Part shown: piece by piece, positions 742 to 64,000 of the stretch
Layout: every line of letters begins with the position of its first letter
Position numbering within the stretch: the first letter of the stretch is position 1
From: Macrostomum lignano
Taxonomy: Eukaryota
Direction: 5' to 3'
NCBI GenBank assembly: GCA_002269645.1
Contig: NIVC01002920.1
Coordinates: 19,062-83,061 of the forward strand
Length of the DNA: 64,000 nt
Notes under the pieces: model-generated
What the model saw: only the letters and a program-made list of their open reading frames with translations
Database searches by the model: none
Told to the model about the DNA's origin: nothing
Position numbers and translations under genes: made by a program

Positions 742-2668
742 TCAGCCTTCATTCAGAGATGCTTGAACACCAGCGCTACCGGTTGAGAAGTGAGCAACCT
801 CTCGAACTGCACTATTTTGAGCCAAAACGGTGCGCGCAACGCTAGGGATATTGGTGCTCAACTTGATTGATCCGAATGTTTGCTTATCCTGCTCCACTGA
901 AATAAGAAAGATAGTGTTATAAAAGAAACTGCCAGTGGTAGGCCTGTAAAATTTTTGCATTCAATCATTTCATCGTTGTGCTTACGTTTGAAAGTTTTAT
1001 CCTTGATGTCACCCTGAGCAAAGTGCTCGCCGAGATTTATCACAGTATTGCAGAAGGGCACTTTTAATGGTGAACTATCTGAGCAGCACAGCCGAATCGC
1101 TACATGCAGCTCTTTGTCGGGCAATTTCTGAAAGCTGTAGTTAAATGTTGTCATGTAGTTGAACTGGATTTCGATTTCGTCGCCACTGCGCTTGCACTTG
1201 CTAGAATTCGACAATTCTACTTTTGGTGAGTCGTTCCAGTTCCAGTCAGAATTCATTTTAAATCCGACAGAACAGTTAGTTGCATCCGACGGGAGAATTT
1301 CCTTTTGAAACTTTACGCTGACAATATTCAGATTGTAAGTCTTTGTTCGGGCAGCTCGAATGTAGAGCTGCATCATTTCCTCCGTGACGCTAGCAAAGTC
1401 GGATTGCAGCCTTGTCGTTTCATGAGCTGCTGGCACAGCCGCTGCCACCGCTGCCGCATCTTCATATTTGGCAGAGTCAGCAGCCGGCCCCAGCTTCTTT
1501 GAGGCCGCCGCAGCAGCTTGAATATCGTCGAAGTCTAGAGCCGTTTTCAACGCATCGGTATGAGCAGTTATATCGGCCTCTGAGAATTTCGGAGCTAACT
1601 CCGATTCAACAAGTTTACAAAGGTTTTCTAACTGCTGAAGCCGTTCGCCGTAAAACTCGTTCCAATCGGACAGAAGTTTTGCTTTCGTCTTCGCCAACCT
1701 TGCCGCCTTGCTTGCGGCTGCCATCAGCGACTCGAATTCGGCCTAAATGAGAATTTTAGTTCAAGTTTGAATTCTAGCTTCGGGACGCATCATTTTATGT
1801 GTAAAATATTTAAATAGCCGTTTAAAGGCTTTTGTCACTCGTCCGGTAGTAATAATAAAAAAATAATTATTTTTTCTGCAACGATTAAGAAAGCCTATTA
1901 ATAAAAATTAAAAAAAATGTTTTAAATAAGTAGTTATTGCATCTAAATGCCTCTAATTTACAGGCATTTGGATGGCGAAATTTCAACTAAATTTCGTTTT
2001 AACTAACTGCTTTACCATTGTGGTATTACTTGGAGTACTAGAAAAACAGCCTTCAAGTTAATTGGAAACCTGTTTACAGATTCCACGTACTAAAAACGGT
2101 TTGTCGGTATCTAGGTATGCAATTGATTTCGAAGCAAGCTTACTTGAAATAGAAGTCGATCGTCGCTATAATGTAAACCGCAAAGATTCCGATCGCAGTG
2201 CTCGCAGAAGCGCATCGAAGGTTTCCCGCATGGTCGCTGTTGAGCACCATTTTCTAAGGCTTCACATGGAGGCTTCTGGCTGTTTGTTTGTCCTGTCACA
2301 TCCTTTGGCGCAGCCTTGGCCGCCGCAACCAGGATGCGCAGCTGAGAGTTCTCAACAGGTCTTCGCAAGTTCTCCTTGCACAGCGGGCATTTCGCCTCCC
2401 TGGGTCCTGAGCTGCTAACAAAACCTTTGTAGCAGGCCAGGCACAGTGAATGGTGATTCGCGCACACATAGTGGGGGTTATTAAAGAAGTCGAGACACAC
2501 CGGACAGGTAACATCGTTCCTGTCGATTTTGGAATTTTGACTGCCAGCTGAAAAACAGATAATAAGATAAACTAAAGTTAATCCCACAGAGAATTAATAT
2601 TATGCTGCAAGCTAAACTGCATTTAAAATTTTGAAACTCAGTAACTTACCTCCGCCTGAACCGCTCAT
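742..2668 (-). CDS. TRIM-like gene A: RING + B-box + helical region + C-terminal RID/RPGRIP1_C-like C2 domain (about 444 aa)
   Basis: Hand-spliced complement(join(742..896,986..1742,2144..2547,2650..2668)) = 1335 nt, in frame, all GT-AG introns. RING CPVC-x10-CANHHSLCLAC-x14-CPLC. B-box-like C..C..CEHCDRNLCGLH. C-terminus (LNIVSVKF, IQFNYMTTFNYS, VINLGEHFAQGDIKDKTF|..GSIKLSTNIPSV) aligns by eye with the RID units at 54-62 kb. Confidence 0.82.
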
Positions 2669-6613: not shown

Positions 6614-6707
6614 AGATACTCAACAGTAGATACTCAACAGTATTATAGTTTTAGTTCATTAGTCAGAGTACTTCAATTCAGTGTGCAAGCGATGCAGTGG
6701 AAGTCCT

Positions 6708-25853: not shown

Positions 25854-26352
<499 letters not shown>

Positions 26353-30033: not shown

Positions 30034-30339
30034 CTGTTAACTAAGTATATTAAAATCCATGTTAACATTCTAGAATATGCTAAGCTACTATGTAGAAACG
30101 GAGAAGGGCATAGATGAAGAGTATTATTGAGCGGTCTGAAGGCAAGTCCAGTTCCTAAAGAGGGACCTATCCAGTTAATCGATGTATAGCACGAGTTGAA
30201 AAGTGGTTAAAGCCTGCTCCAGCTAATCAGCTTGTATGTGCCATAAGTAATTTCCAGTACTGTATAGATTTGTCTATCGCTTCGCTTCGCTCGCCTCGAG
30301 ACCATTATTTGCGACCTCTGACTTTCTGACCACAGAATG

Positions 30340-32183: not shown

Positions 32184-33195
32184 TTAAAACATTGGTGGCA
32201 CTGGGGAACTTAAACTTGATCTACGGGATCTACGGCATCCATCGCATTGACAATCCAACTCCGTCCTGAATGCTGTATGTGGTCTAGAAGATCTGGCTGT
32301 TTTGCTGTACTTCTTTTGCGGTGCGTGAAATAATTTTTTGACACCACCGCAAATTCGTGTTGCAGTCCCGATTATGGAGACCAGCTTTGCTTTACAAGCT
32401 TCGATTTCTTTCTTCTGCTCATCGGTTTGAGGCAACCCGAAATCTTGCGACTCCAGCTTCGGCGCTGCAGCAGGAGCAGCTTTCAAGCGGTCTGCGATGG
32501 CTTTGGCTTTTTTTAGCTCACCAGATCGAATGGAGGCTTTCAAGCCGTCTGCCTCAGCTCGACGGGAGGACCCGGCCGCTGCCTGCTCCAGCCTCTGCTC
32601 TGTGGTTCTCAGCAGCTCCTCCAGGCGCTTTTTTTCCACATCGATAAATTCGATAAGACTGCCGATCTGAGCTTTCCAAGGTTGCAGTGTAGCGCTGACT
32701 TTGTCGCATTCCTTCGCGTCTTTCTCCACAGATTTTAACAGGTTGTCGCATTCAGTCTGGCAAGGCAAGCATTCCGTTTTATTAATTTTCGTATTAATAC
32801 CTGCTAAATACTTCAGCTTAAATTACCTTAAACTGAATCCGATGTTCACCAAAGTGCAGATCGCAAACATTCAGGTCGCAGTGACCGCACTTGACAAAGA
32901 CTGAGTTAGGGCACTGTTTTACCCGGCAGGTGGCGCCGGGCGGCGGTTTTGAGTGGAATTCTTTGACCAGCTTGGCCATGGCGGCGTGCTCCGTCGGTGT
33001 AGAAAGCGTCTCTCGGCACACCGGACACTTTGCGGGTCCGAAAAGGGACGTCTCCAAATGGCGTTTGTGGCATTTGCGGCACAGAGTGTGGTGGTTCGGG
33101 CACACGAAGCACGGATCAGTAAAGATTTTCATGCACACCGGGCACTTCAGGTCTTCGTCGTCTCTTGAGCTCATATCTAAAACTTCAGGGGTCAT
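32184..33195 (-). CDS. TRIM-like gene E: RING + B-box + helical region (about 313 aa)
   Basis: complement(join(32184..32756,32827..33195)) = 942 nt, 70-bp intron in the same position as in C, D and F. Confidence 0.8.
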
Positions 33196-37360: not shown

Positions 37361-38274
37361 CTATATTTCATACATAGCCGCTGCATATATCGTATCATCT
37401 TCAAAATCATCACGACAGCTCACACCTCCGCAAATTCCTGTAGCGGTCCCGATTAAAATATCCAGATTTGCTTTACAAGCTTCTATTTCTTTTCTCTGCT
37501 CATCGGTTGGAGGCCACCCGAAATCTTGCGAGTCCAGCTCCGGTGCAGTGGCAGCAACTTTCAGTTGATCTGCGATGGCTTTGGCTTGCTGCAGTTGGCC
37601 AGATCGAAGGGAGGCTCGCAGGTCGTCTGCCTCAGCTCGGCGGGAGGACCCGGCCGCTGCCTGCTCCAGCCTCTGCTCTGTGGCTCTTAGCAGCTCTTTG
37701 AGGCGCTCTTTTTCTATATCGATAAATTCGATAAGACTTTTGATCTGAGCTTTCCAAGGCTGCAATTTAGCGCTGACTTGGTCACATTCCTTTGCATATT
37801 TCTCCACAGATTTTAACAGGTTCTCGCATTCAGTCTGGGGAGAGAATAGTTTCATTTCATTAATTTTCGTGTCAATACCTCCTGTACTTCAGCACAAATT
37901 ACCTGAAACTTCAATCGATGATCGCAGAAGTGCAGATCGCAAAAATCCAGGTCGCAGTGACCGCATTTGACAAAGACTGAGTTGGAGCACCGGGATTTGC
38001 CTTCAAACACCTGGCAGGTGGCACCGGGCGGCGGTTTCGACTTGAAATCCTGGACGAGCTTGGCCCTGATGGCATCCTGCTTAGGTTTGGAAAGCATCTC
38101 TCGGCACTCCGGACACTTTGCGGGTCCAAAAAGGGACATGTCCGAAATGCGTTTGTAGCATTCGCGGCACAGCGTGTGGTGATTTGGGCACACGAAACAC
38201 GGATCAGTAAAGATGTATTTGCACACTGGGCACAGCAGGTCTTCGTCGTCAGGTCGCTTTTGAGCTTCCATCAT
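37361..38274 (-). CDS. TRIM-like gene F: RING + B-box + helical region (about 281 aa; 5' end unresolved)
   Basis: complement(join(37361..37834,37903..38274)) = 846 nt, 68-bp intron. An extra upstream exon near 38.4-38.5 kb is possible. Confidence 0.8.
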
Positions 38275-41200
38275 GGACGAATAGCCAAGGGAGCTCACAG
38301 TTTCCAATAATAATTGGTGCAATTGCACTTTTTAGCTGTGCGACGATTACACTGTTAAGAAAAAAAATTTTGAGCTGACTTGTTTTATACCTTACTGTTT
38401 TCGTAATCAAAAATGACGTGCGAAATGTTTCGTTACATATGAAAACCAGGCCAACCTTTAGTCTGTCAGCCATGCAACTCAGTTTTCTAAAGACTGCTTG
38501 AAGTCATATAAGAAAGGACGCTAAACAAAGTACATTTTATGAAACCAACCAAAGTATTTTGATGCGAGCTATTAAAACCCCTTGATAATCTTTATTTTAG
38601 GACATTTTTCGAATCGCAGATAAGCTCTATCACTCTTCAATCCAGAAAAATTCTATAATTAGGACTTTGATTTTTTATTTGTTTCAGAAAAGTAAATAAG
38701 AAAATTCTCAGTTTATAAAAAATGCAGCAGTAAGCATAATGCAAAATTAGCTATGACAAAATGCCTATTCTTGTCTACACTAAATTTGACGCAGTGTAGC
38801 AAACTTTTGAAAATTTTTGCCTTTAGCAACTATTTTTTCAATAGATCCGCGTTAGTAGTATGTTTTGCTTTAAACTGCTTTTTTATCTAAGTTCAGTTGA
38901 TGAGGACGCACTTTTTTCCAAATTTCACGCTCGCACATGGGTTCAAAACTTGCTAGCCTACTAACAGCATGCTATGGGCGTTTTTTTTCTTTTTCTTTTG
39001 TATTTTTTCTAGAATTCATCCTAGTAGGACTTCTGTAGCTATATTAATTTGCCATACTTGTAGTTATGATAACATAGGCGCGGTTTTTTGCTGCTTTTGG
39101 GTCATAAATCATTGCTTTTGAGCTGGTCTGACAGCCACCTGCGCCTCACTCAGTGCTGGGGCTGGCGCCAGATGATCTGAGAGGATGCGAATGGTAGCTT
39201 TTTTCTCATCATTTTGACAGTCCATCAAGATTTATGAGGTTAGGGCCTATTTTTCGTGTTCACTCAAGCGTGTGACAGCTATGCGTTTTACCCATAAAAG
39301 TACGTTGGGATTAGCGATTAGCGATTTATCTTCATTATCTTCACTTTCTACTTAATAAGAGCTTTCTAATGTATATTTTTTCATTAGTTTTTTTTCGATT
39401 CTACGCGGAAAGTCATAAATCATTTTGTTGCGATTTTTATTGATTTATGGCCGCATCTGTCATATATTTACGACCCCGAGGGAACTGATAGGATCTCTTG
39501 GTCACGTGACTTTGGGTGGCAACAAGCTCAGCCGATCAGAAAATTCGACGTGCGTTGTAACAAATCGGCTCAGCCAATCAGAATGGAGGTGTTCCATTAT
39601 AACTAATTGCGGTCCAGTTGGCGGCTTTGGCCGGCGTTTTTGGCCGGCGCGGACCTCAACTGGCTCGGAACTTCCTGCTACTTGCTCGGGCCCAGTACAC
39701 GACCGTCGTTTCTTGATCCCCGGATTGCGACTTCCCCCATCATCATCAAGGACGAGTCCCCCTGGTCGTCAGCAGTAAACATCAAAGTTAAGAGCATCAC
39801 CTGCTAGCTATCAGCGAGGATTGGGACATCAGCATCATCCCGGGTCTACAGCTGCGAAGCACTAAGCCGATTCGGTCGCTGTGGATTACCTGGTCTCCGC
39901 CTGTTGAGTTTCTGATTGGTTGGGTGAGAGGCTACCTAGACTTGCTTGATTTGGTGATTCCTTATCTGTCCCCTATTTCAGTAGCTGGATTAGGCGCACA
40001 CTTTTGCTCATTTTATTTAGTAGTGCTGTTACTGAGGCAGAAATCATTCAATAATACTGATAGTAGTCTGAGACTCCAATTCAATCTGAAGTGTGAGAAG
40101 ATCTAAGGAGAAGGAAGGAGAAGGAGAATCCGACAGTTATTTTTATCGGTTTTATTTCTTTGTTCGCCGATGGCTCAGATGAGTAGCTAAGCTAGTAGGC
40201 GCCGGTCACAGTGGACCAATGGCAAGGCAGTTCTCAATCGATCAATCTATCAAATCAGTGAGCAAAACTGCCAGAAGTGCAGAATCGGCGCCAGAGATGT
40301 ACTTTGTGCACTCTAGGTTCGCCAAGCGGCTCGGGTAATGAATCATGCGGTCCCTGAAGTTGGAGTTGGCCTATCATCAGGGCTATGAGAGGCTGGTTGG
40401 CGCGTTGAAGGCCAAAAGTACAATTCTTTGTATTTAGCAATGTAATAGTACATGTAGCTACCCCATAGTCTCGCCATTGCAAGAATCCCCTGCACAAGTC
40501 CCCTCTGTACCTGCATGGCCAATGCGATCTAGTCCCAGCAGTGTCCCTTAACATCGGCTATGACTTCGAGATTGACAGCAAAAAGACACTAGTTGGCAGG
40601 TAAGTGCAAAGCCCCCTCTAATCGGAAGCCCGATTTCGAGAGTCCCGGTGTGGTGAGCCAGGACGCACGGGCTGGTGGCAGCGAGTTAGCTTAGTCTGCG
40701 GATTAGCTAATTTCTACCTTCAAAATTCTCACTGCTTGTCTCTCGCTGTCCCTCTCTTAGCTATAGGACCTAGACTGCTCGCCACACGATCAAGCTACCA
40801 TGGGGCTGACCATCTGACAGGAGTGGGGGGCCAGGACTCTAATTTATTTATTTCTGAGACCTAAGGCCCGAAGGCTTCCCCACAAGGGAGCTGAAAGGCC
40901 GAAACCCATCACAGCTAAAAATGTCCAAAAACGATTTTATCGAAATGATTAAACCTAATTTTCGGTTAAAACCTAATTGTTCAAGTGAAACAGTGCTGTG
41001 CACGAGTTCATGGGCATGAAACTTTAACTTAACTTCTGCTAGTGTAATAATCTAGGGATTTCAGATATGGACTTATCAGGGACTTAGAATAATACGAGAA
41101 TAAGGGTTTATGTTAAAACGTATCTAGACAAAAAATTCATTGAACTCATAACTCGCTATTGTCATTAACTTTTCTTAGCTCAAGTGTCCCTTTTCGGGGT

Positions 41201-42414: not shown

Positions 42415-45265
42415 TCAGGGTACAAAGCGACGCAGAATCTGCCTGAACGGCTCCTCAGGATGGCCTCTACCAGCGGCCGAGAACCTTCCAGTCAGTCGAA
42501 GGACGCCGCTAGGCGTGAGTATCGTCGAGTCGCCGTGCACCGCCTCTAGAAACGGTCGCTCCATCTCGTGTCCCAACTCTGTCGCTTTTAGATCGAATTC
42601 CTGACCGGATTTTACCGGCGGAGACACCTTCGGCGTCTTAGTCAACGAATTCAAGTTGTGAAGTCCTCGACGATTCAGTCTGTTGAAGGCGACACTGGCC
42701 ACTTTTAAGTCGCCAGTGTCCAGAGCTTCGCGCAACTCGACAGCATCGGCAGCCGCGGAAGTTGATAGGGCAGCTCCGCGCGAGGAATCCGCCATCTCGG
42801 CGGCCATAGCGGAGAGCGCATCAAATCGCTGCCGCTGATGCTCCAGGGCATCGCGACAGTCGGCAAAGAGGCGACTCCACTGCTGCAGAGCCGACTGGCG
42901 CTGCTTGGCTGACTGGTTTGCCGACTCTGCCGCTCTAATTAAAGTGCTGGACTCCTCCTGAAAGAAAATTTGACAAGTTGACATGTAGAACATGAACACT
43001 AATTGCAGCAATATCCGTTGTAAACCGTTGCTTTGTTAAAATTTGAGCGAAAAATGTTAGTTTTAGTTTTGGAACTTTAGTTTTATGTAATAATAATTAA
43101 TTACCTCGTGCACCTGCCCAAATAGGCAGATGTGCAACCGACAGCTCAGCCGCAGCTATTGCGCGGCGCATCTGAAGGCTGCGTACGGCTGTTCAGTCCA
43201 AGGACTGGGGGGGGGGGGGGGTCGCCACACGCACCCTCAATTACCCCAGCTAATGCTGGCACCCATTTTACAGCTGGGTGAACTGAAGCAATGCAGAGTT
43301 AAGTGCCTTGCTCAACGACACAAATTGTTCCGAGTGGGTTGAGAATCGAATCGAGGATCGACCTTTCAGTCGTGAGTTTCGACGCTGTAACCATTAGGCT
43401 ACAACCCCTTTGTTGCAGTTTATTAATATTTGTTGTTACTTTGGTAAAACAATAGGAATCGGAAATCCTATTATAGTTTAGAATTTATAGCTTTGCATAC
43501 GAGTATAAGTAGCAAACTACGAGCATAAGGTATAAATACGGTATTCCACCCAAATAATTTTTATTGTCAAAGCTGTCAATCAGTTATAATTGTGTTCCCC
43601 GTGTAAAGTCAACAGATCATCAAGTACTCCTAAAAAGATATGTAAAGTCAGCTTAATGAAAGCCAATCTTAGATTCATGAAAGGTCTAGAAATGGAGGAT
43701 CAAGGCTGAAAGCATTGCAGCAAACCTGGGAGAAATCCGAATGACCATATTTTTTAAGGATTCAAAATGGTCTAGCGCTTATTAAGGTATTCAATCGCTG
43801 TTTATTAAAAAAGTGTTTGTTATGCTACTGATTGAGGGAAATACCAATGAAAGAAAACATACGGCTATTGATACGGATCGAACTGCTACAAACCGATGAC
43901 TACTTCTACCGATTGATCTGTTACAAACCAATGACTACTTCTACCGATTGATCTGTTACAAACCAATGACTACTTCTACCGATTGATCTGCTACAAACCA
44001 ATGACTACTTCTAGCGATTGATCTGCTACAAACCGATGACTAATTCTACCGATTGATCTGCTACAAACCAATGACTACTTCTAGCGATTGATCTGCTACA
44101 AACCGATGACTAATTCTACCGATTGATCTGCTACAAACCGATGCCTACGTCTACCGATTGATCTGCTACAAACCAATGACTACTTCTAGCGATTGATCTG
44201 CTACAAACCGATGACTAATTCTACCGATTGATCTGCTACAAAACAATGACTACTTCTACCGATTGATCTGCTACAAACCGATGACTACTTCTACCGATTG
44301 ATCTGCTACAAACCGATGACTACTTCTACCGATTGATCTGCTACAAAACAATGACTACTTCTACCGATTGATCTGCTACAAACCGATGACTACTTCTACC
44401 GATTGATCTGCTACAAACCGATGACTACTTCTACCGATTGATCTGCTACAAAACAATGACTACTTCTACCGATTGATCTGCTACAAATCAATGACTACTT
44501 TTATCGATTGATCTGCTACAAACCGATGCCTACATCTACCGATCGAGGACTACTAAATTTAAACAACTATAAAAGATTGAACGACCGTACAGCAATCATG
44601 CGCTTTCGTTAAACTAACTCTGAACGTTTTAACTTACGAAGTTACGATTATAACCCACCTTAAATCGCATCTGATCGTTAGCGTAATGCATCTCGCACAG
44701 GTTCCGATCGCAGTGCTCGCACCTGGCAAATACCTGCTGCAGACAGGCACAGTTACCGGCACCCTCTCGAGCGTCGCATTTCGCGTGATGAAGCCACTGC
44801 TCCCGCCGACGCCAGCTGTCTACCACGCCGCGGACGTGAGGATTCTCCAGCGGACGATCGACCAGACGCTCGCGACAAATCGGACAGCGGGCCACCTCGC
44901 CAGACGAGTGACATTTGGTTGCGATAGCCTGGTGACAGCCGCGGCACAGAGTGTGATGACGGCTGCACACGAAGCACGGATCAACGAAGGTGCTCAAGCA
45001 CACTGGGCATTTCAGCTCCTCTTCGAGATCTTTGACTGCCGGAATCGAAACGTATTTTTGCATTTAAATAGACAGTTTCAAAACTTGGGCACTTTGCTCA
45101 GGTTTGTTGCGTTTTAAGATTGATTCAATTTGATTATAGTCGACCGTAATACCGAAAGACTTAATTGTTACAATGTCATAGGTTTGAATTTTTACAACAA
45201 ACAACTTTACAATGCAGAAACAACAACTGAGATAACTTACAGGTTCCACTTTCTGCAGACATCAT
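42415..45265 (-). CDS. TRIM-like gene G: RING + B-box + helical region (about 314 aa)
   Basis: complement(join(42415..42957,44659..45035,45241..45265)) = 945 nt in frame; the 1.7 kb intron holds a SINE and a 35-bp minisatellite. Confidence 0.8.
43090..43405 (-). mobile_element. tRNA-derived CORE-like SINE, copy 3 (intronic in gene G)
   Basis: Minus-strand A box tagcctaatgg, B-box-like gattcgattc, core cccattttacagctgggtgaactgaagcaatgcagagttaagtgccttgctcaa. Confidence 0.8.
43880..44545. repeat. 35-bp minisatellite (CTGCTACAAACCGATGACTACTTCTACCGATTGAT)n
   Basis: About 19 head-to-tail units inside intron 2 of gene G. Confidence 0.96.
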
Positions 45266-47857: not shown

Positions 47858-50008
<2,151 letters not shown>

Positions 50009-50884: not shown

Positions 50885-52931
50885 ATGAGCAAATCATCTC
50901 AAGGTTTCAATGTTGTTCCTATATTTTATACTTCTGATTTGCAGAGGTTGCTGAGGAGCTGCTATGCCCCGTGTGCTTGGATCCCTACAACGACCCCGTA
51001 TATGTGTGCATCCATCACCATAGCCTGTGCCGCGAATGCTACCAAATGATTGTTTCGACAGCTGGCAGTGACATCCCGCAGTGTCCGCAGTGCCGAGAGA
51101 AATTGACCAGACCCGTTGATAATACTCAACTGCGCCGTCTGGTGGAGGCTCACCAACAGCAATCTCAGCAGGCGGTCCAATGCCAGGACTCTTCCTCTGG
51201 CGGCATCTGTGCTCGGCGTAGTGCTGAGCGATGCGGGCACTGCGAGCAGAGCTTCTGCGCGCAGCACTTCATCGCTCATAAAGAGCAGTTTCAAGTGCGT
51301 ATGAAATTCACTGTTTCTTTATTGTTTTTTAAGGTTCTCGCTCTGAAGATTAATTTTTAGGTTCTTAAATGCGATCACTGATTTCAGACCGATTGCGTTG
51401 AGCTTTTGTCGGCTGCAGATGAAGCAGCTCAGCAGTCAGAGATTCGACAAAGAGTGCTAACCGAATGGGAAGTCTTTATTCAAAGCTGTGTAGCGCATCT
51501 GATTGAGAATTCGAGACTGCAGCGATTAATTCCCGAATCCTGGCTCGACGATGCATCCCGGAGGCACGCCGAAGATTTACGAAGCACCCTCAACGCCGGT
51601 GACCTGCGGGCAGCCAGAGTTGCCTATGATGAACTCAGGATGGCCAAAGCGAGATTCGACCAGCAAGGACCGCCTCGCGAGATCGTTGGAGAGCTCAGCC
51701 GAGATGCGTTGTTCTCTCTGTTTCAAGAGAAGCTTTCAGCCCTGCTGAACGAAGCTGAACAGGTGTACCTTGACGGCATCTACGGCTTGGTCGAACGCGT
51801 TTGCCACATTGGAATTTCCACAGTCAAGCTGAAGATTGGGAAAGAGATACAGAAAATTCCGGAGCTCAAATGCCGGCTTAGTTTCGTCCTGCCCGGTCGA
51901 GGCAGTCACTTCACTCCCTATGTTGACCTCAAAGCCATTCGTGCCGAGCAATTTGAAAGGGACATTCTGATTCGTTTCGATTTCCAGCAGCAGTTCGACT
52001 ACAGCACCATCAGTATGTCGAACGGTCTGGCCATTTTGGCGCAGTTTCTGCAGAGAGGACCGATTGAACTGCCGTTCTGTCTTCAGATGAAGTTTAAGGA
52101 GAGGCTGGCCTCCGGGGTGGCTGAAAATACCTACTGCAGCAGAATGTATCAACTCGCAGCTTTGCTGCCACTGGCGGAGGCGATCAGTCGTGGGGAGAGC
52201 ATCGAAAACGTGGAGTGTCCTTGTGAGCTTCTGAATAATGTACACTTTAAATTACCTTTGTCTACTGAGTCATGACCCTGTTAATTAAACTACAAAAGCT
52301 TTTAGTGTAAAATGCACCAAAAACTCGCGAAACTAACTTTTCTGGTTTCTTAGAAAATATTTGGATTCTGGGCTTGCGCAAAAAATGCAATGCTGTCATG
52401 CTGAAATAGGAAATAGCTTCTCTTCAACACAAATGATAATAATATTAGTTTTTGTAGAAGCAGATTGATAGTAAACTTTTCTGCTGGTTAGATCAGAGGT
52501 ATTTGGAAAGAGTACTTAATTGTTCAAAATCAATAGTTTTTTGCTTTATGAACTAATTAGATAGAAATTGACTTTTACAACTGTAATGCGCATACAAAAT
52601 CAAGGATTTACAGAAGTTGCCCTGTCTGTCTAATGAGTGTCTGACTGGTGGAAATTAACGTTGAAAACGTGAGCTCCTAGCTCGACCGTAAAGACCAGCT
52701 GACGCAGTGCAATTAGCCAGTCGTCGTTGAGCCAGCTCCGGCTTCTTCTGAGATTGAATCTCCAAGAACCAGCCTTAATTGGTCTTTCCCGCAGTGCTGG
52801 ATGAAAATGAGGCACCTCGCGGATGTGTCACGGTGTCCACCAACCTGCCGTGTCTGCTGAACCAAGTCTACCGGGAGCTGCCGGCTGAGGAGCAAAGCGA
52901 AGTTGAATTGAGGCTTCGAGGAGAAGAGTAA
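50885..52931 (+). CDS. TRIM-like gene I: RING + B-box + helical region + C-terminal RID/RPGRIP1_C-like C2 domain (about 446 aa)
   Basis: join(50885..50903,50945..51294,51388..52222,52795..52931) = 1341 nt in frame. The last exon, missing from the ORF track, reads LDENEAPRGCVTVSTNLPCLLNQVYREL and matches the RID small exon GSIKISTDLPSLLLEIGREL. The first exon is less certain (41-bp intron). Confidence 0.82.
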
Positions 52932-54128
52932 TTTCGTTTGTCCGAAGTCAAAATATGGTAAAATTGAAAGGTTGATTAGTTCGCTAACGATGAAAACTGG
53001 AAACTATGGCGTTGTCTGAACAGATTTTAAAAAACTTTTTTGAACAGTAATTGTTTCTTCAAATATTACTCCAGTGGCTGTCTACATGTATATTTAAACA
53101 ACTTCATACAATACTATCGCCGTAGTATTTCTGTTCTGACCTCAGTTGGTGCCTCAAAAGGCGTGACTACGCACTTCTTTCAAGCTCAGGAAGCAGGAAA
53201 ATATTGGATTGCTATTAACTTTTCGCAAAAAACTTTTTGTCAATTTTTATAGAAAATATTGGAAGAGATTATTTAGCTAGCCAGGAGTTTTACACATGAT
53301 TCTTTTTGTCAAGAGTACGAGCGAATTATTCACTGTGCTCGTATTGTGTTTTAGATATTCTATTTATTCTAGAAAGTTTTTTAGGGTGGTTTGTAGCTCG
53401 TAGGTTTGAACGCACTCATCTTGACGTCGTCCGTTTTTACATTTCATCATCAGCATCTTTCAGAGTCGTGTGGTGAGGAAAACACACGCTTAGTTGCCTA
53501 TTTAAGGCATAAAATGATTTCTTTTCGAGTCATTGTATAATTATAACTTTAAACCAACTGGTTAATTAAGCGTCTTTTTCAATTGTTTGTCTCCAATTGT
53601 CGCCGTATTCACGCTCGTATTTAACTAAATGGAACGTATTACGAGCTAAAAAGCATATATATTTTGAATTATCGAAGTGCGTATTTTTTTAGCCTCAAAA
53701 CTTATTAATCATGTGAAGAACAGTTTAGTTTCATAAAACGCTTTTTGGGGTACACGCGATAGTAGAATTATTATACTGTGTAACCTTACAATCAATGATA
53801 TATACACGCTCAAAAAATCGCTTATTTTTAAGCAAAACAAAGAGTTCTTATTAAAAATTATCCATAAAACTTTGTTTAAGTTACTTACGGGGATAAGGCA
53901 CGTATAGGCACTTTATCAGATACCTCGTGCAGAATCAAACAGCTTAAAAGTTAAAGGCTGCATTATTCGACTCGAACTCACATGCAAACTAATCACAGAC
54001 AAATAAAACAAGAGATATAAAGTGAAAATCGATATGAATCCAGTATAATATGGAATTAAAAGTCAGGTGGTGAGTCACCTTTTGAGAGATGAAAGCATAA
54101 AATTAAGTCTTTCAGACTCAAAAAAATA

Positions 54129-57100
54129 TCACTGCATTCCATACTCACTTTTAACGTGATGAAGCAGCCGTGGCAGGCTGGTTTCAATCGCGATGCTGCC
54201 AATCTTCTTCTCGTTTTGAATGACTGAAATGAAAACGTTGATTGAATCTGGGGTGATTAACAGTAAAATACATTTTTTCTTTGTTGGATTGTGTTTTAAA
54301 TGGTGTTTTAGAAATCGAACAAACTCGGAGAAGAAGTATAGCTCGTAGATCTATTTTTACCGTTACAGAAAATATAAAAACTGACACTCTGCGGAACCTT
54401 TGTGAGAATTCTATTCATCGGTTGATTTTTTATAATTCGGCTAAAGTAACTTGGTCACTCATTTAGTTGTCAATATATGATCCACTACACAAAACTTTAA
54501 TGCCTTATAAAAGACCCACGAAACATTTCAAACGTCTGTAGACCCCACGTCGATGTACGTCGCAGGCAATTGGGTATTTTGACGTTAAGCCGAAGGACAA
54601 TGACATCATGCGTAGGTCAGAATTCGATGTAATGTATTAAATGTATCAAATCTGCCCCCCAACATAGATGGACGTCGAAAACGTCTGCTGACCTAAATGA
54701 CTTCAAATTGCAGACGGGAGAGAGAAATCTCTAAATCTCACGTGGAAACTCGTTCCAGATGCAGCGGTCCTGTTCGATACTGGGTTGCAGGCCGACACTG
54801 GCCTCGCACAAGTCGCCGGCTGCCTCAGAAGCCAGCGTGAATCGAAGCTCGACTGGATCAGCCAGTAGCAAGCTGGTTAGCTGCTTCCTCATTCCTTCTT
54901 CTGAGTAATCGAAGCGCCATATATAGTCGAAGTTTAGGCGATAATCTCCAGGCTGAGACCACCCGGGTCTGGGGATGAGCACGCTGGGCGTGTGCGTATC
55001 CTCAGAGTCGGAATAGCCAGGTAGATTGAAGTAAACATAGCAGTTGTTAAGTTTGGGATTTTTCAAGGCCTCACTGTTCTCCATTAGATGCACAGTTGAT
55101 ATGGCGATGTCGCAGTGCCTCGAAACACTTTTCACTGTGAATGGTTTTTGTGTTTATGCTTTTTCTAGAATTTGAAGCGTTTACAAGCGTTAAAAGTCGA
55201 AAATACTTACTCCTATAATTCAGATGACTTCTGATGCTGATAGGTACAAATCTAAGTAGAGATTTTGGTAGCTCACGGCCGATCTCCAGTAGCAAGCTGG
55301 GCAAATCCGTGCTGATTTTGATGCTGCCCACCTGCTCGGTCCTCGCCATTACTAAAAGTTTTTGATAAAATTCATTACAAAATCCGAAATTCATATTTAC
55401 CGTATACGCTTAACCAAGAAAAAAGCAAGTTTACACGCACCAGGAAATCTCTCGTCTCTAACATCTACATGTACTTCACGTCTTAAGTAATCATCGAGTT
55501 TTATGATAGTCCTTCCCAATTCAGTCTTAACGAAAGAGCTTGCCAAGTTTGGTGATTTGCAAAATACTTTGAACGCGATCTGCAGGTTTCCCTCGAGAAT
55601 CGACTTGGCCAGCATCAGGCGGTTTTGGTAGTTGCCTGTCATGCTGTAGTCGTAAGTCTTTTCAAAATTGAAAGCAAGAAGGAACCCGTTTTTCGGAGAT
55701 TGCACCGAATTCAGGACTGGTCTCAAAAGAGACGTCATTGTTTCTTGAAGCTTGAAGCCGACTAGGTCAAATGCTACGTAGCACTTTCCCTTGCCAAGCT
55801 GTGAATTTGTCAAGACTTCAGATGAGCCGTTCAGTTGCACGTCAGCTATTCGCACAGTGCAGTTCTCAACGAAGGCTTCATCGATTTGCGAATAGGCTGA
55901 TTATTACCTGTAATCGAAAGGTACATGTCTGTCGTATCTATGGGAATGCATAGTTGTAAATATGAAGCCTCATTTATTTAATAGTTAAAAATACAAGGAT
56001 AGTTCGACATTGTCTCACCCTCGGCTTCATTTTCCTCAGCAGTAGGTTTTTGGACGTCCTCAAACGAGTCTAACCGTTTCCTGATCGAAATTAGCAGACT
56101 CGGCAGGCTCATGCTGATTTTGATGCTGCCAACTTTATTACCGTTTGACAGTACTAAAGTTACAAAGCGATACATTTTAATGCGACAACAATTCGGACAC
56201 TATCAGCATGTGATGCTAAAAGCCATCTAGCTTTTTACCAGACAGTATACATTTTTTTAAACTCTTGAAACTTGACTGAAACCTGCATTGCTTGCATACG
56301 AGTACTAAGAACTCATATTAATATACGACCAATGCCATCATATCACACTGGGACTACTGAAATAAAGGGTAAACCACCGTTGGACTAACAGGGAAAGCCA
56401 CCCACTGTCTATCTACCGATCTAAAAAAACTCACGTGGAAAGCTTTGTTTTCGAATATCCTCGCCTCGAGCAACAAACTCGTCCATTTTGACAGTCGCCT
56501 TGCCAAGATCCATGTAGAATTCACTCTCTGAGTCGGACGGCTCGCAAGCTACCACGAACGGAATCTCGATGCACTTTCGTCTTAAAAGCAGCATAGTTAA
56601 TATTTTTCTCTTGCTTGCGCTGCTGTAGTCGTAGACTCCTTGGAAATTGTAGCTGAGGCAGAACTCCTCAGGTCGCGACCGGCCCGGCCTGGGCGTCGGC
56701 ACAGATCCGGGCGTTTCCGTCTCCTCGCTTCGGAAACCGGGTAGCGAGAAGAGCACGGAGCACTTGGTGTTGTCGAGTTCTGGCTTCCTCAAAACATCGC
56801 TTGTTTCACTGAGCTCCACATTGAATATCTGGACTTTACAGCTTTCCATAGTGAATGAAACTAAACCTAGTAGCTTTTTTAAGTCGTTCTAATTCTGTCT
56901 GGCATCATTTAAATAGCAAGTTCGCAAACTGCAACTTCAGCTGAACTTTGGAATCTAAGAGGGAAGGTGAAGTTCTTAGGTAAAAATTGTCCACCTTAAT
57001 GAACTCCCACTTTCTCTGAGTAATTTGGGCTCTGGAATAATATTAGCAAAAAATGAAGTCAGAGATCTTCTACGTGCTGCAAAAGCCAATCTTCCTTTGT

Positions 57101-59444
57101 GCGAAAGAGAGTTAGAAATTGTCAGAAAAGTGGATGCGCTGCACACATCTTTGAGTACGTCATTGTGCATAATAAAATGGCAGCACTAAAATTAGCAGCT
57201 TACCCAAATGAAGTTCGCTTGATATTTTCTATTTATCTACCAAAATATAAAAATAAAAACGCTGAAACAATATCTAATTCATAATATAATCAGAATATAA
57301 TTCTGAATTAGAAATAAAAACAAAAATTGCAAACTTATTCACTAAGAATCTACGATACACACACCGTAAAACATAACAAACGAGATTCTCTATAGATGTA
57401 CATGTTAGTACAGAAAATTTAATTTAGAAATAACCTGATGCATCAGTTACACAACCAATGAGCATATGCTTACATGTAAAGTTGAGCAAAATGTTAGTAG
57501 CATGTACAGCTGATTCTAACGAGCGCACTGGTTTGATTATAGCTCTCATAACTTTTTTAGCAGAATTTCAAACCACTTGGGCACTTTGAAATTGATAAGC
57601 TTTCTAGCTCTTTAAAAAAGTTATTGACTTTTTTTTACCCTCTGGTATTTCATCGCAGATTTCCCGCAGCAGACTGGGCAAGTTGGTGCTAATCGTGATG
57701 CTGCCAACAACTTCATCTCCGTTCAGTACTGAAATAATAAAAAACGGCGTGTCTGGTGAACGACGCGTCTACTCGACATGTCCACTCAAAGCCCATTCTA
57801 CTGAATTTTAAGCACGCACAAACATGAAAACAATCATAAACTCATCAACTCAATCATGAAATTATCAACTCAATCATGATATCATCAACTCAATCATGAT
57901 ATCATCAACTCAATTATGAATCATCAACTCAATTATGAGATCATCAACTCAATTATGAATCATCAATGTAATCATGAGATCATCAACGCAATCAATAAAT
58001 CATCAACTCAATCCATAAAATCAACAACTCATTTTTGAAATATTCAACTCAATCATGAGATCATCAACGCAATCGTGAAATCATCAGCTCAATCAATGAA
58101 TCATCGACTCGATCATGAACTCCTGAACTCATGAATTTGATTATCATCAAAAGCGTGGATCATTCAAAATTAAGACCACAAAAGAACATCAAAAGTTAGC
58201 TAGGATAAAAAATCAAAGCGAATAAACTAATTAATTAACATGTCTTGAAAAAACCTACACGGAAAGCTCTCGTCTTGAATGTCCTTGCCATCAGACACAC
58301 GATCTTCGAGCTTGACGACCGCAGTGCCAAAATCCAAGAAGAACTCGCTGTCCTGATCCTCCGCCTCGCACACCAAGGTGAACGGAAGCTTAACTGGACT
58401 CGCCATTAACAGAGTGGCAAGCTGGATCCGCTTATTGTAATTTGTATCGTAGCTGTAGTCAAATCTCTTCTGGAAGTTAAACCTAAGATGGAAATCTTTT
58501 GCCTTGGTCCAGCCTGGTCTTGGCGTTGGTAGCGAGAGAGAAGTCTCCGTTTCGTCCATATCAAAACCAGGTAGATCAAAGGACACAAAGCTGTTGGTGT
58601 TGTCGAGCTCGGGATTCTGTAGAGCTCGGCAAGATTGCTCTAGCTGGACACTCGATATACAAACTGTACACATCTCGCGCGAGTCTGCTTTAGAAGTCGA
58701 CTGAGTCTTCCGACTGAGTGCTGAAGTTTGTTTCAGGTTTCAAACTCTTATTGAGAGTGTCTTTACGAGAAAATGACGAATAAATACAGAGTAAAATGGC
58801 AACAATAAAGCTTAAATTCTCACAGTCTTTAATATGATCATCGGCAGCTGGATTCGTTTCTATGCAAACGGCGAGCAGTAAGCTGGGCATACTTGTGCTC
58901 AGCTTTATCGTGCCAACTTGCTCTTTGTAGTAGGAAAGCACTAAAATATAAAACATCCGATTGATAGTAGTTAAGGAACTGATTTCAATTGATTACCTAC
59001 CGGTATTTTAAAAATATAACATTCTCAACCCGCACCAGGAAAGCTTTCCTTTTGGACGTCGTCCTTTCGAGCAATTCTATTATCGAGTCTGACAACGGCT
59101 CGGCCCAGATTAACTTCACTTTGCGATTCGTCCGGTAGGCAAATCAGGGTAAAATTGACATCAGCATGATACCGGCTGAGCATGTCATCCAGAGCCTGTC
59201 GCTTGCCTCTGCTGGAATAGTCGTATGAACTTTCGTAATCGAATTTCAGGACCAGATCCTGGCGTGTGGACGCTCCTGGTTTTCGGGTCGGCAGGATGGC
59301 GGGGGTCCTGGTGGCCTCCAGCTTATAGCTTGGCAGATCGAAAAGCACGTAGAACTTCGAACTTCTCAGATTCAATCCTGCCAAATCAGGGCAAGTCTGG
59401 TCGAGCCGGACGCTGAATATTTTCACCACGCAGCTTGATTCCAT
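54129..59444 (-). CDS. Protein of five tandem RID/RPGRIP1_C-like C2 domains (about 885 aa), stand-alone or a 3' extension of RPGRIP1L
   Basis: complement(join(54129..54223,54742..55134,55277..55351,55441..55896,56019..56153,56435..56860,57639..57728,58259..58720,58824..58940,59036..59444)) = 2658 nt, no stops, nine phase-1 GT-AG introns. Each domain is a large exon ending F-P-x plus a small (V/I)GSI.IS..LPSLL exon. A further 3' exon is possible (donor at 54148). Confidence 0.78.
57836..58130. repeat. Degenerate minisatellite of about 20 bp (ATCATCAACTCAATCATGAT)
   Basis: About 14 imperfect units inside an intron of the five-RID gene. Confidence 0.88.
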
Positions 59445-61485
59445 GGCTCCGCTGTAAAATCCGCATAAAATCCATGTAAAATTCAGATATTATTAGTTTG
59501 ATAAGAGAGTTCTCGCTGTTTCTAGAAAATTAAAGAACCTTTTTTTCCAGAATGTTCTGAATTACTGATTGACTGAATTACTGAATAAATTTGTTTGAAT
59601 TACTGAATAACTTTGTTGTTATACTCGTGAAATCTCAGTTTGTTGAAATGAAGAAAAAACAGCGAGAACTTTCTTATCAACCGAATATAATTATTATCAG
59701 TTGCTCTTTCTGCAAGCTTACCCAAATTGATGGTTCTTTGCTATCAAGACTTGCAGTCAATATAATCGTACTTGCATATATGATTACGAACTTATACACT
59801 GCTACAGAGGTATTCTGAAACTTTTTCTGCATTGTGTTGGCTTTTTAGCGAGAGACAGTTTGCATTTTGAAAGACTCACAATTCGTTCGGATGGATGGAC
59901 GTATGTACGAGTGAGCGCTCAGAAAGACTTACTCATGCATGATATGTGAGAGAACCATTTAATTTCGACAAATCTTACACTATTCATCAGTGGTCTATTG
60001 TACGAGTACATTAAACTGCCTGCCAACTCTCTCAACTTAGCTCTTATTGTGGAGTATGTGCGTACTCAGCATCCACATCTAGTCTGTCTGAGGTTTGCGT
60101 CCACTTTTTACAAAGCATTCTTTTATTAAAATGCGTCTAAACAGTCTCTAAGCGTAGCTTTCTGTATGCTAGAAAGACTACTGCACTCGTACATCCGTTT
60201 TAGTAAGTTACATGTATTTTTAATTTTTCTCAAAAATAGTGCATCAAACCTCTAAAGGACAGTTAATTGCTCGCTTTCTTATTTGAAAGTACAACAGGCG
60301 AAATATTATAAATTTTGTCTTATAAGCTTTCCATCTCCCTAATGAGAAATCCTCGAACGAACTTTTAAACTGCATCCTTTAGATATCCATAAAAACTTTC
60401 TCAAATTTGATTCCCACGTACACCGCCTTTCTGACAAAATACTTAGATTGTACTATGGTAAATAATAAATAAAAGTCCATTCGTGCCAATGCTGCAATTC
60501 CACTTGCATTGTTCAAAAACAGGTCTTTTGAAAGAGATTTTCTTACCATGTTATACTCAGAATCTAAAAGTATTTTTGCATATACTGCATTTAGGACTGT
60601 ATGGTATTGAATGATGGGTCTTTGATCGAACCAAAAAGTCTGAATTTAGAGCAAACCTTATTTCTTAGTTTTTGAATTTGCTCGTATATTTTCTATCCGA
60701 TATTTCGTGTCAGCTGATGGAGAATCTTTCATAACTCTAAATAACTTAACCAAATAAGCATTATTAGAAGAGGATATAGTTAAAATTAGATTTAAAATTT
60801 TCTCAGATCGACAACCGGCACATCTTAGGCGCATAACCCTTAGAAAAGCGTTTATTTCGCTTTTGAGTTACAAAGCAATTTTTAACTTAACTTTATCCCT
60901 GCTCGTCGCAATCGCGCTAAAGTAGTTACGCTCGTAGAAGTAAAAATATCAAATATTCAAGTCGGTAAAGTACGAGACGCAGCATCTGTGATAGAAGATA
61001 GACAGGTTTTTTTCAACATTTTTGTAGAAAATCACAGCGAGAAAGCGAAAGATCAGGCGTCGAAATAATAAATAAAATAGTTCTTAAGAGTACGAGCGTA
61101 TTCCTTTACATAAACGTGGTGCGAGGTTTCTGAGAGTGCATGTTTACTCTTACAGAAATACCGAAAAGAGACAGTTCGTCTAAATTCTACCACAAAGTAC
61201 CTTAACCGAAACGGAACGAACCAGAAACTATTAGCAAGACACTCCAGGTGCCGATATTACCAAGCTACCATAACTAGCCATAAATCTAAAAAACTAGAAA
61301 ATACGTAACACCATTTAGCTTCAAAACATGACACGTGCCAGACGTTATTATAACGTACAACAAAATCGCAGTGTACTATGATGAGAATCGCATAAAGGTA
61401 ATAAAATATCTGCAGGTTTTTTACAAAATCCATTATACTAAAATCAAGTCTAAAATGTCTTTAACAGCCAGAAGACAGAGCAGGA

Positions 61486-64000
61486 TTAGTTAACGAATCT
61501 GACGGCAGACTTTTTCGCGTCCGGGAGTTCGTTGTAGACCTCCAGTAGCAGGCTCGGCAGGTTCATGCTGATTTTGATGCTGCCCACTTGTTCATCGTTC
61601 AGCATTACTAAAATTGTTAGAAGACACATGGCATGATTAATGTGAGGTTTGGATTAGTCAAACTTTTTTATTTACCAAATATTGAAAAAAATATAATTAC
61701 ATATTACTACTAATGATAATAATTGATTAAACCTGCCCAAAGGGTATTACGTGGCGCATCTGAAGGCTGCGTACGGCTGTTCAGTCCAAGGACTGGGGGT
61801 CGCCAGATAGCCTCAATTACCCCAGCTAATGCTGGCACCCATTTTACAGCTGGGTGAACTGAAGCAATGCAGAGTTAAGTGTCTTGCTCAACGACACAAA
61901 TTGTTCTGAGAGGGTCCAAAATCAAACAACCGACCTTTCAGTCGCTTGTCCAACGCTCTGTAACCACTAAGGCTACAACAAGTATTTGTGAAAGTGTATT
62001 TCAAATAATCCTACTCGAGTTTTCACCCGAGTCAACTGGAACTCACGAGGAAAGATCTCTTCTCGAATGTCCTCGCCTTGAGCGATTCGATCGTCCAAAT
62101 TGACCATCGTTTTGCCCAGATCCACGAAAAATTCGCTCTCTGGATCAGACGGCTCGCACACCACAGTAAACGGGATCTCAATACTCTTCTGTCCCAATAG
62201 CAGCATCGCCAGTACTTTGCGCTTCTCGTAGCTGCCGGCGAAACTGTAGTCGTAGACTCTCTGAAAGTTGTAACTGAGGCAGAACTCATTGGTCGGGACT
62301 GGCCGGGCCTGGGCGTCCAGAGAGACACTGGCGTCTCCGTCTCCTCCTGCGAGAAGCCAGGCAAGAGGAAGAACACGTAGCACTTGGTGTCATCGAGGTC
62401 GGGATTTCTTAAGCCTGGCAGGTCTCGCTAAATTGCACGTTGAATATCTGGACTGTGCAGGCTTCCATTGAAGCACGACCAGTAGCTGTCAGCATCAGCT
62501 GCTGGCGGAGCTCGTCCCCGTGGCTACTCTCCGTCACCACGCCATCGATTCCTCCGCCTCCGGTGCCGGACGCTCTGTGTCCTCGTAGTCGTCCTCATAC
62601 TCAACCTCCTCCACTTCGTCTTCCGGTTCCGCCTCGGCAACGTCGTAATCGTCGTCTCGCAGACTGACGGACTGCAGATGCGAAGCGACGCCGCTTCTAC
62701 CAACGCTTGGACCTGAAGAATTCGTGGAGTTTAGAATTCGCTTGGAGCTTGGAACTATTGGTTTAGTCTTTATCTTCTGCAACCTGCTTATTCGTTTTTA
62801 GACAAGCCCTGGGTCAGGGTCATTGACAATGCCGAAACTCACCTAACGATGTATTTCTCACGTCCTGCGTATCCGTGATGCTAGTTACGCTGTCGGTGAC
62901 GGATGCTAAAGTGATGAAACCAGTTAGGAAAATTTTAGCAGCCTTGTTTTAGCCAGAAATAGTACTAACAGTAGGTTGATTAAACATGCATAGGCCTACC
63001 ATCCATGAGGGTGCTGACCCGAGTCTGGCTCGCCTGCGTATCGCCAGCGCCACCGCTGCGCCGATGCCAAAGCCGACGCTCTGCGCGGCAGCGGCTAAAG
63101 CAGCGGCCGACGGGCGTGCCGTTTCGGCGGTTGCGGCGTCTGAGACACCTGCGGCTGAATTTGGAGTTGGGATTCAAAATATACAGCTAGCTAAAAATAA
63201 ACTTCAGTAAATTTTATTATCTTATCAACACTACCAACCTGATTGTCCCCAGTCAGAGATCCCGACCGACTGCCAGTTCGTGCACTCGGTCGTGGCGACG
63301 ACGATCCCGACGCTGAATTCGGTGCTACAGCCGACGCTGTTGGCGATGGACCATGGCTGCTTCCGCTGGCACTTCCTGGGTGCCTCGGCGCGGGGTTCTC
63401 GGCTGCTGAACTGGCTGTGGCTGCGGCTGCTGGGGCTGAGTCGCTGCTGCGTGCTTCTCGCTGATCCGGTGTCGGATCCCAAGGCCACCGCCGCGCTGCG
63501 ATCAAGAGTAGAGTCATACCCAGGTTCCCGACGGCTTCAACTGCGGCTTGTCTCTCAGCAGTTCAGCTTCGCCAGTCATCAGTGGCAGAGGCTCGGCAGG
63601 TCCGTCCCAATGACCAGCTGGATTGTACGCAAACTGCCAGCTGAGCTCAAGCTCCAGAGTGCCGTTCGGCTGCTGATCAGCTCCGAGTAGTTGGTAGATG
63701 CCCTGCACAGCCCGGTTCTGGCTTAAGGACACTAGATCGATCTACATGGGGATACGAGTAGATAGGGGATTAGTAATGGGTAAATCGGTAAGAATAAGAA
63801 TCTTTTGGGTCTTGAATATCGAGAAATATGAAAAGTTCAGCCATGGCTGTTAAAACGTGTCTAAATCCTTATTGAAAACAATGAATGACATCCAAGTCAC
63901 CTTAGCAACGCCTAGGTAGGCGCCTTTCAAGAGGATCGTCTTCGTCCAGCACCCAGACGACGAGCTTCTGCGTCTTCAAATAGCGATCCAACTCTGGGGT
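61486..64000 (-). CDS. RPGRIP1L: 3' part of RPGRIP1L/MKS5-like gene (end of second C2 domain, low-complexity/acidic linker, RID); partial, several frameshifts
   Basis: ELDRYLKTQKLVVWVLDEDD..YLGVAK|IDLVSLSQNRAVQGIYQL....PNGTLELELSWQFAY matches the RPGRIP1L C2 end as recalled (DLDRYLKSESL..VFDD, ISGIFEL, GTIHVILKWKFAY). The RID carries ETETPVSL and FTVVCEP. Exons: 63901..>64000, 63520..63741, unresolved 62990-63500, about 62047..62780, 61486..61607. Confidence 0.8.
61705..61978 (-). mobile_element. tRNA-derived CORE-like SINE, copy 4 (last intron of the RPGRIP1L-like gene)
   Basis: Same body as 43090-43405; head tgtagccttagtggttacagagcg on the minus strand. Confidence 0.78.

Follow-up and report, generated by a model that had tools for sequence, protein, structure and literature searches.

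The locus described here raises the question of what is made from five tandem copies of the RID, the C-terminal domain of RPGRIP1 and RPGRIP1L, which lie downstream of an RPGRIP1L gene in Macrostomum lignano. The DNA analysed, referred to below as the window, is a stretch of 64,000 nt from contig NIVC01002920.1 of assembly GCA_002269645.1 (positions 19062-83061; the end of the window is the end of the contig), and the array runs on its minus strand from 59444 to 54129 as five tandem two-exon units, each with one RID (Pfam family RPGR1_C, C2 fold). It had been proposed, in what we call the original prediction, that these units form one spliced frame, a multivalent array that arose by amplification of a symmetric exon module and is kept under selection. 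We show here that units 1 and 2 are cis-spliced into a single mRNA, annotated as Mlig026271, and are under purifying selection. Our comparison of three paralogous loci also shows that units 3-5, as judged from their sequence, are intact, in phase and provided with consensus-like putative splice signals; the balance tips slightly towards their still being coding, although probably under weak constraint.

In a six-frame translation of 54000-59600, large open stretches of 140-170 aa occur five times, and behind each of them comes a short stretch with the motif VGSIKIS..LPSLL. Rebuilt from the sequence, the model consists of ten exons and nine GT..AG introns, all of phase 1, which join into a single stop-free frame of 909 codons. 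The start and end coordinates, the five two-exon units, the number of exons and introns and their phase are thereby the same as those predicted originally; the length of 886 codons given there was not reproduced, the earlier reader presumably having chosen other boundaries. Unit 1 is formed by a large RID exon (exon 1, 59036..59444), which begins with the ATG at 59444-59442 and ends at the phase-1 donor GTGCGG, and by a small RID exon (exon 2, 58824..58940, VGTIKLSTSMPSLLL), which is entered in phase 1 and left through the phase-1 donor GTGAGA. Seven nucleotides upstream of the ATG stands ttttacag, a possible 5' untranslated region (UTR) or spliced leader (SL) acceptor. Unit 2 consists of exon 3 (58259..58720, with the motif ETETSLSL) and exon 4 (57639-57728), which has a candidate phase-1 donor, GTAAAA, at 57638; the spacer of 772 nt that follows, intron 4 of the model (56867..57638), ends with the acceptor gctactag. 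Unit 3 is made up of exon 5 (56435..56866, ETETPGSV) and exon 6 (56019..56153, donor GTGAGA). Exon 5 contains an in-frame ATG at 56851 (MESCKVQIF), 15 nt past the acceptor, which is a possible start for a three-RID protein. Unit 4 comprises exon 7 (55441..55896, ETMTSLL) and exon 8 (55211..55351, donor GTAAGT), and unit 5 comprises exon 9 (54742..55134, DTHTPSVL) and exon 10 (54129..54223), which closes with the stop codon TGA at 54131-54129. These four motifs and ATRTPAIL are all present as originally written, and so is ETETPVSL in the RPGRIP1L copy at ~62330. Six codons ahead of the exon-10 stop there is a consensus phase-1 donor, A/GTGAGT, at 54147-54148, with no further RID exon downstream; it may be a relic of the chaining of modules. 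Intron 3 carries at ~57830-58130 a tandem repeat with a unit of ~19-20 nt (atcatcaactcaatcatga), and its length varies among the loci (530, 636 and 848 nt).

The first two units correspond to an annotated gene. Exons 1-4, with read-through of the intron-4 donor, are letter-for-letter the 370-aa two-RID protein PAA46747.1/PAA54392.1 (BOX15_Mlig026271g3/g4), whose GenBank gene call covers 59444-57604 on the minus strand (L004:4557-6397). Exons 1 and 3 lie within this product, both junctions that flank exon 2 are used in it, and the end of its coding sequence at 57604 is reached through exon 4 plus a read-through of 35 nt (57604..57728 in all), which adds GKKKSITFLKS and a stop. The exact match confirms junctions 1-3 of the nine. 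The M. lignano annotation was derived from RNA-seq, with genome-guided assembly and with SL trans-splice and poly(A) sites that had been mapped by experiment (PMC5730564). An older ML2 model, A0A1I8J8Y7 (331 aa), skips exon 2 and has the same read-through stop. The proposal of one spliced five-RID frame is therefore borne out as far as junctions 1-3, which are part of an annotated product, while the annotation leaves the intron-4 donor unspliced and junctions 5-9 are without a transcript model. The exact products of units 3-5 (544, 548 and 550 aa in the three loci) are absent from a collection of 15 billion proteins. The GenBank set was filtered for non-coding transcripts and repeat overlap and can miss weakly expressed genes, so that the absence of units 3-5 from it is evidence of weak or no expression and not proof. 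No AATAAA is present in the 56867-57638 spacer or just past the final stop, Rfam has no match within 53000-60500, and we found no paper that names Mlig026271, Mlig013276 or Mlig004133, nor are they named in two supplementary files of PMC5816591.

What has to be explained about the splicing of the array is the joining of one unit to the next. All five intra-unit introns interrupt the RID at the same point as in RPGRIP1L and in two neighbouring RING-RID genes, after FP and in phase 1. Since position and phase are shared with RPGRIP1L, the intra-unit introns are inherited, and the four inter-unit junctions are the actual hypothesis. The gaps between units measure 103, 772, 122 and 76 nt. A bare in-phase GT..AG path between neighbouring units was found in 45-51% of shuffled sequences per junction, and the mere possibility of threading the units together is for this reason weak evidence. 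The inter-unit donors are GTGAGA, GTAAAA, GTGAGA and GTAAGT, each with a YAG acceptor, so that the signals are consensus-like at all four junctions. An in-phase GTRAR donor with a YAG acceptor occurred in ~6% of shuffles per junction, and the product over the four junctions is 1.3e-5, for a motif that was defined only after the data had been seen. No Met precedes the domain in units 4 and 5. Lacking a start codon, these two units could be translated only if spliced to an upstream unit and are not independent genes.

The junction between units 3 and 4 depends on the choice of acceptor. The frame of exon 7 in the window is kept only by the acceptor aatcag at 55897/55896, and the better-looking acceptor ttacag 11 nt upstream (exon start 55907) leads to a stop after ~20 codons. 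In the two paralogous loci described below, L001 and L002, ttacag is the in-frame acceptor, and both carry one extra T: just inside exon 7 they read CGCAAATTCG, against CGCAAATCG in the window, where the T is missing at ~55884. The T is missing from the overlapping contig NIVC01004714.1 as well; this contig, however, is the same locus assembled twice, and its agreement is no test of whether the deletion is genuine. The identity of the two assemblies follows from the alignment of window positions 50904-64000 with L003 5434-18537 (the start of NIVC01004714.1), which over 13.1 kb has 0 mismatches and 30 indels. L003 is therefore not an independent copy, and the 'g3' and 'g4' entries of Mlig026271 are one gene.

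M. lignano DV1 carries duplicated chromosomes, and two further copies of the locus, L001 (NIVC01001491.1) and L002 (NIVC01000210.1), are 94-98% identical in DNA sequence. Both keep the ten-exon model open, with all introns in phase 1 and every GT and AG in place; it has 913 codons in L001 and 915 in L002. Only three coding indels separate the three loci: two of 6 nt, in frame, in exons 7 and 9, and the single T. The 6-nt indels sit at the places where the length of units 4 and 5 departs from that of the others; the one in exon 9 is a deletion in the window relative to L001 and L002. A repeat of 367 nt lies inside intron 9 of L001 (13869-14235) and L002 (13875-14241) and not in intron 9 of the window, where it occurs elsewhere, at 24644-25006.

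To assess constraint, substitutions were placed on the tree of the three loci (window, L001 and L002), with the neutral expectation taken from the transition/transversion ratio in introns. For units 1-2, 18 synonymous and 11 nonsynonymous substitutions give a nonsynonymous to synonymous ratio (omega) of ~0.21 (p=4e-5), which is purifying selection; the pairwise Nei-Gojobori values of omega are 0.13-0.29 in units 1-2 versus 0.45-0.58 in units 3-5. A pairwise ratio among the five units themselves is unusable because synonymous differences are saturated (pS 0.61-0.81), although pN (0.22-0.52) is lower than pS, and for this reason the comparison of paralogous loci was used in its place. Saturated pS together with low pN indicates that the unit copies are old and that each was constrained through most of its history. 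The recent relaxation of constraint concerns units 3-5 only. Selection on the array, as originally claimed, is thus seen in units 1-2, whereas the omega of units 3-5 (~0.5-0.7) is not significantly below 1. The spacer 56867-57638 has 0 indels and 0.6-1.3% mismatches among the three loci, where the synonymous divergence of the flanking exons is 2-10%; a UTR, a promoter or gene conversion might account for this unusually conserved stretch.

The five RPGR1_C hits expected from a hidden Markov model scan were obtained. Pfam reports five RPGR1_C (PF18111) stretches in the spliced five-unit model (151.3 bits, E=2.8e-44), and units 1-4 pass the gathering score of 22.9 bits also when taken alone (33.0, 43.6, 46.6 and 32.4 bits). 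A profile of the RIDs in the window matches PDB 4qam_B, the RID of RPGRIP1, with E=2.2e-9 (profile 7-172 versus residues 31-196). Unit 3, which alone was modelled with AlphaFold2 (predicted local distance difference test score 83.4, predicted template modelling (TM) score 0.78), has as its best Foldseek match again 4qam_B (E=5.6e-11, TM 0.71/0.73), followed by other C2 domains. By sequence, the array units are members of the RPGR1_C/RID family, and unit 3 is predicted to adopt the beta-sandwich of a type II C2 domain. RPGR1_C is the only family that Pfam reports on the model and on the 370-aa protein, with no coiled coils and no PF11618/C2 region. The array products accordingly lack the architecture of full-length RPGRIP1/RPGRIP1L (coiled coils, C2-C2_1 PF11618/C2, one RID), and they lack that of TRIM/RBCC proteins (RING, B-box and coiled coil), domains which occur in neighbouring genes.

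With regard to the origin of the array, the end of RPGRIP1L (Mlig004133), a gene of the same strand, is at 61486, which leaves 2 kb to unit 1 downstream. The penultimate exon of this gene (62047..62712, minus strand) encodes an acidic linker and the large part of the RID (ETETPVSL) and is of phase 1 at both ends; its last exon (61486..61607, minus strand) starts in phase 1 and encodes the small RID part, VGSIKISMNLPSLLL, followed by the stop. The RID of RPGRIP1L is 64% identical to unit 3 and 38-51% identical to the other units. A neighbour-joining tree, which carries no support values, groups all Macrostomum RIDs in a single clade, separate from the RIDs of other animals; a second RPGRIP1-like paralogue belongs to this clade, as do the two RING-RID genes. 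An intact RPGRIP1L paralogue of 1290 aa has PF11618, C2 and RPGR1_C regions; the true orthologue is the gene upstream of the array. These sequence relationships fit an array that is specific to Macrostomum and goes back to repeated duplication, at the DNA level, of the two final exons of RPGRIP1L. The proposed tandem amplification of a symmetric phase 1-1 module is in line with the phase of the penultimate exon and with the shared position and phase of the intron, and the argument is sound provided that each copied terminal exon gained a phase-1 donor. The RPGRIP1L exons in the window have apparent frameshifts at 63924, 62547, 62412 and 62292, three of them in the penultimate exon. We considered whether this copy is a pseudogene and rejected the idea: each of the four is a homopolymer difference of 1 nt against the overlapping contig NIVC01004714.1, which lacks these indels and has 0 mismatches, and 20 indel discrepancies cluster in the last 2.8 kb of the contig (61214-64000), as contig-end assembly errors.

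The two RING/coiled-coil-RID genes are Mlig013276 (446 aa; 50938..52931, plus strand, with a first short coding exon further upstream), which is convergent with the array, and a second gene at 745..2593 on the minus strand, a homologue of the 420-aa protein A0A1I8GQ13. Both end in a diverged RID that is split by the same phase-1 intron as in RPGRIP1L; at E<0.01 they are without an RPGR1_C match in Pfam, but the local profile finds the domain at E~5e-10. The original prediction regarded the array as the donor pool for these TRIM fusions. In the tree, however, their two RIDs pair together and outside the five units, and therefore nothing marks the array as their donor.

How far the array is expressed as a single protein is the point on which the possible explanations diverge. 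A protein of ~909 aa, made by regular splicing of all ten exons and selected as a multivalent array, would account for the single open frame across nine phase-1 GT..AG introns, for the persistence of this frame in the two paralogous loci, for the consensus-like in-phase signals at four of four inter-unit junctions, among them GTAAAA...TAG at intron 4, and for gaps of 76-122 nt that are too short for separate promoters. A number of observations, on the other hand, weigh against it, and most of them also against the account that we favour below. In two independent annotations the reading frame runs through the intron-4 donor and thus stops behind unit 2; the acceptor of that intron is the weakest of the nine, with the poorest pyrimidine tract. 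Across three loci and two sets of annotation, the older ML2 set included, units 3-5 are never part of a gene model, and no longer product is found in protein collections: a full search with HMMER, in which the RID profile was run against 1.84 billion cluster representatives, yielded 43 proteins, of which the top six are all from Macrostomum lignano, and nothing that resembles unit 3, 4 or 5. In the window haplotype 1 nt is missing at the start of exon 7, so that the unit 3-to-4 junction needs a non-homologous acceptor there and the whole frame hinges on this choice. Unit 5 by itself, at 17.2 bits, falls under the Pfam cut-off, and the 36 substitutions in units 3-5 (12 synonymous and 24 nonsynonymous, omega ~0.68, p=0.18) are indistinguishable from neutral evolution. 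On this evidence we regard a regularly made five-RID protein as unlikely. A different arrangement, in which one transcription unit holds the two-RID gene and a separate gene for a protein of 544 aa with three RIDs (units 3-5, from Met 56851), its 5' end being generated by SL trans-splicing at 56867/56866 or by a promoter of its own in the 772-nt spacer, would agree with the widespread SL trans-splicing in M. lignano, where ~7% of transcripts are multi-gene precursors (PMC5730564). It would also make sense of the ATG so close behind the acceptor of unit 3, of units 4 and 5 having to join unit 3 in order to be translated, and of the conserved spacer. The spacer would in this case be no intron but the 3' UTR belonging to the two-RID gene, followed by the 5' region of a cistron for units 3-5. 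The missing gene call, the absence of the exact product in any of its three lengths and the weak recent constraint argue against this arrangement, which we rate as rather improbable without dismissing it.

The same observations could also mean that the two-RID gene alone is functional and that units 3-5 are silent duplicates which lost their function recently and have not yet acquired disabling mutations. Their absence from every annotation and predicted protein set, an omega not significantly below 1 and clearly above that of units 1-2, the 1-nt indel at the 3-to-4 junction of the window haplotype and the position of units 4 and 5 as the most diverged, with unit 5 under the cut-off, are what such a loss would leave behind. 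Yet ~550 codons are free of stops in three loci, all splice sites are kept, both 6-nt indels are in frame, and every locus has an in-phase exon-7 acceptor left despite the 1-nt indel. Units that are old, as their synonymous saturation indicates, still score as RIDs, which means that the loss would have to be very recent, and a filtered annotation can miss genes that are weakly expressed. We consider silent units a serious alternative, albeit one that we doubt. The least probable explanation by far is that the units serve RPGRIP1L as mutually exclusive 3' cassettes or make up an operon with five one-RID genes. It would be suggested by their location 2 kb downstream of RPGRIP1L and on its strand, by the phase-1 acceptors of all large exons, as in the penultimate exon of RPGRIP1L, and by the short gaps between units. 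It is largely refuted by the annotated mRNA, which begins at the ATG of unit 1 itself and joins units 1 and 2; moreover, just one good acceptor stands ahead of unit 1, and relative to the frame its phase is 2. No start codon is available to units 4 and 5, and RPGRIP1L already possesses an RID and a stop codon.

The account that we favour combines an RID array derived from RPGRIP1L, a functional two-RID gene, and units 3-5 that are coding but weakly constrained, the products acting as multivalent ligand binders; taken as a whole, we judge it somewhat likelier to be right than wrong. Under this account, splicing of intron 4 may include units 3-5 in a minor five-RID isoform, or they may form a three-RID cistron that starts at Met 56851, for which the same AG would serve as SL trans-splice acceptor; in either case their expression would lie below the level captured by the 2017 RNA-seq annotation. 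The RID belongs to the type II C2 domains; Ca2+ and lipid are not bound by it, its ligand is the RCC1-like domain of RPGR, and RPGRIP1L binds RPGR in the same mode as RPGRIP1 (PMC4519163). The RID of mouse Rpgrip1l also binds the 19S proteasome subunit Psmd2, and proteasome activity at the base of the cilium rises when the free RID is overexpressed (PMC4494006). Since RID-only products lack the anchoring coiled coils and the central C2 of RPGRIP1L, they are expected to be soluble, multivalent binders of RID ligands. By analogy with vertebrate RPGRIP1 and RPGRIP1L, such proteins could compete with RPGRIP1L or cluster its partners, and binding of RPGR or PSMD2 by the Macrostomum RIDs is conceivable on the same grounds. 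The ciliary scaffold or decoy of the original prediction is likewise a conjecture. The neighbouring RING-RID proteins would direct an E3-type head towards these ligands; set beside the binding of Psmd2 by the mouse RID, a fusion of this kind is suggestive of a link with ubiquitination. A more far-reaching version, according to which the C2 module of RPGRIP1L became a small gene family of RID-only proteins with two to five RIDs and of RING/coiled-coil-RID proteins, and a five-RID protein is made in at least some cell type and, at the bases of the worm's many cilia, competes in soluble, multivalent form for RPGR or the ciliary proteasome or clusters them, appears improbable to us in this complete form.

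Most of the window is filled by seven further two-exon genes without an RID, all on the minus strand (15720-16774, 23494-24405, 29106-30036, 32187-33198, 37364-38331, 42418-45063 and 47861-49143), each with a RING (CPVC..HH.LC..C) and a second Cys/His cluster in one exon, followed by a coiled-coil exon; by sequence these TRIM-like genes are a tandem family. Three paralogous single-exon open reading frames of 306-326 aa (6711-7688, minus strand; 8127-9044 and 12676-13596, plus strand) have hydrophobic N-termini and conserved cysteines and no Pfam match. A GC-rich (55%) remnant of a long terminal repeat retrotransposon pol gene, with an integrase core and reverse transcriptase RNase H, is broken over several frames at 20200-21950, and long microsatellite or minisatellite arrays, open in six frames, lie at 3560-4361, 5743-6650, 25779-26376 and 27936-28904.

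RPGRIP1L is a core protein of the ciliary transition zone and a human ciliopathy gene. To our knowledge, its RID is among the few C2 domains known to act purely in protein binding. A natural protein with several RIDs and nothing else is therefore a test case for RID ligands outside vertebrates, and could serve to find out whether RPGRIP1L meets competition from free RIDs for RPGR or the proteasome. What is new here is modest, namely three more intact in-phase RID units, an RID-only architecture in an animal and the clustering of the array with RPGRIP1L and RING-RID genes; the two-RID gene itself is already known from GenBank and UniProt as an uncharacterised protein.

Among known systems, the nearest is this Mlig026271 entry (UniProt A0A267E131, 'RPGRIP1 C-terminal domain-containing protein'), which is identical to exons 1-4 plus the read-through stop. 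It differs from the array in stopping after two RIDs, and the further three in-phase units are annotated nowhere. RPGRIP1 and RPGRIP1L share with the array the domain family of every unit (PF18111), the fold predicted for unit 3 (PDB 4QAM chain B) and the intron that splits the RID. They are, however, proteins of ~1300 aa with coiled coils, a central C2 and one C-terminal RID, whereas the array has RIDs alone, two in the annotated product and up to five on paper. The original prediction was correct in assigning a single RID to RPGRIP1 and RPGRIP1L; yet proteins with three to five RPGR1_C domains exist elsewhere. Unnamed environmental eukaryotic proteins from ENA metagenome assemblies have 2-5 such domains, and three of them have 5, 4 and 3 (the last in 580 aa). 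Like the array, they hold a tandem RID module in one polypeptide, but they are distant relatives that fall outside the Macrostomum clade, are mostly much longer, with other regions, and are apparently intron-poor; judging from their sequences, they represent independent expansions. The B-box-RID proteins of Mytilus edulis (241-255 aa, labelled 'RPGRIP1L', e.g. CAG2186541.1), together with Mlig013276 and A0A1I8GQ13, resemble the array in that the RID has been freed from RPGRIP1L and placed in small lineage-specific proteins; these fusions have a single RID behind a zinc-finger E3-type head, which the array lacks. Taken together, these sequences indicate that the RID has been reused as a free module several times.

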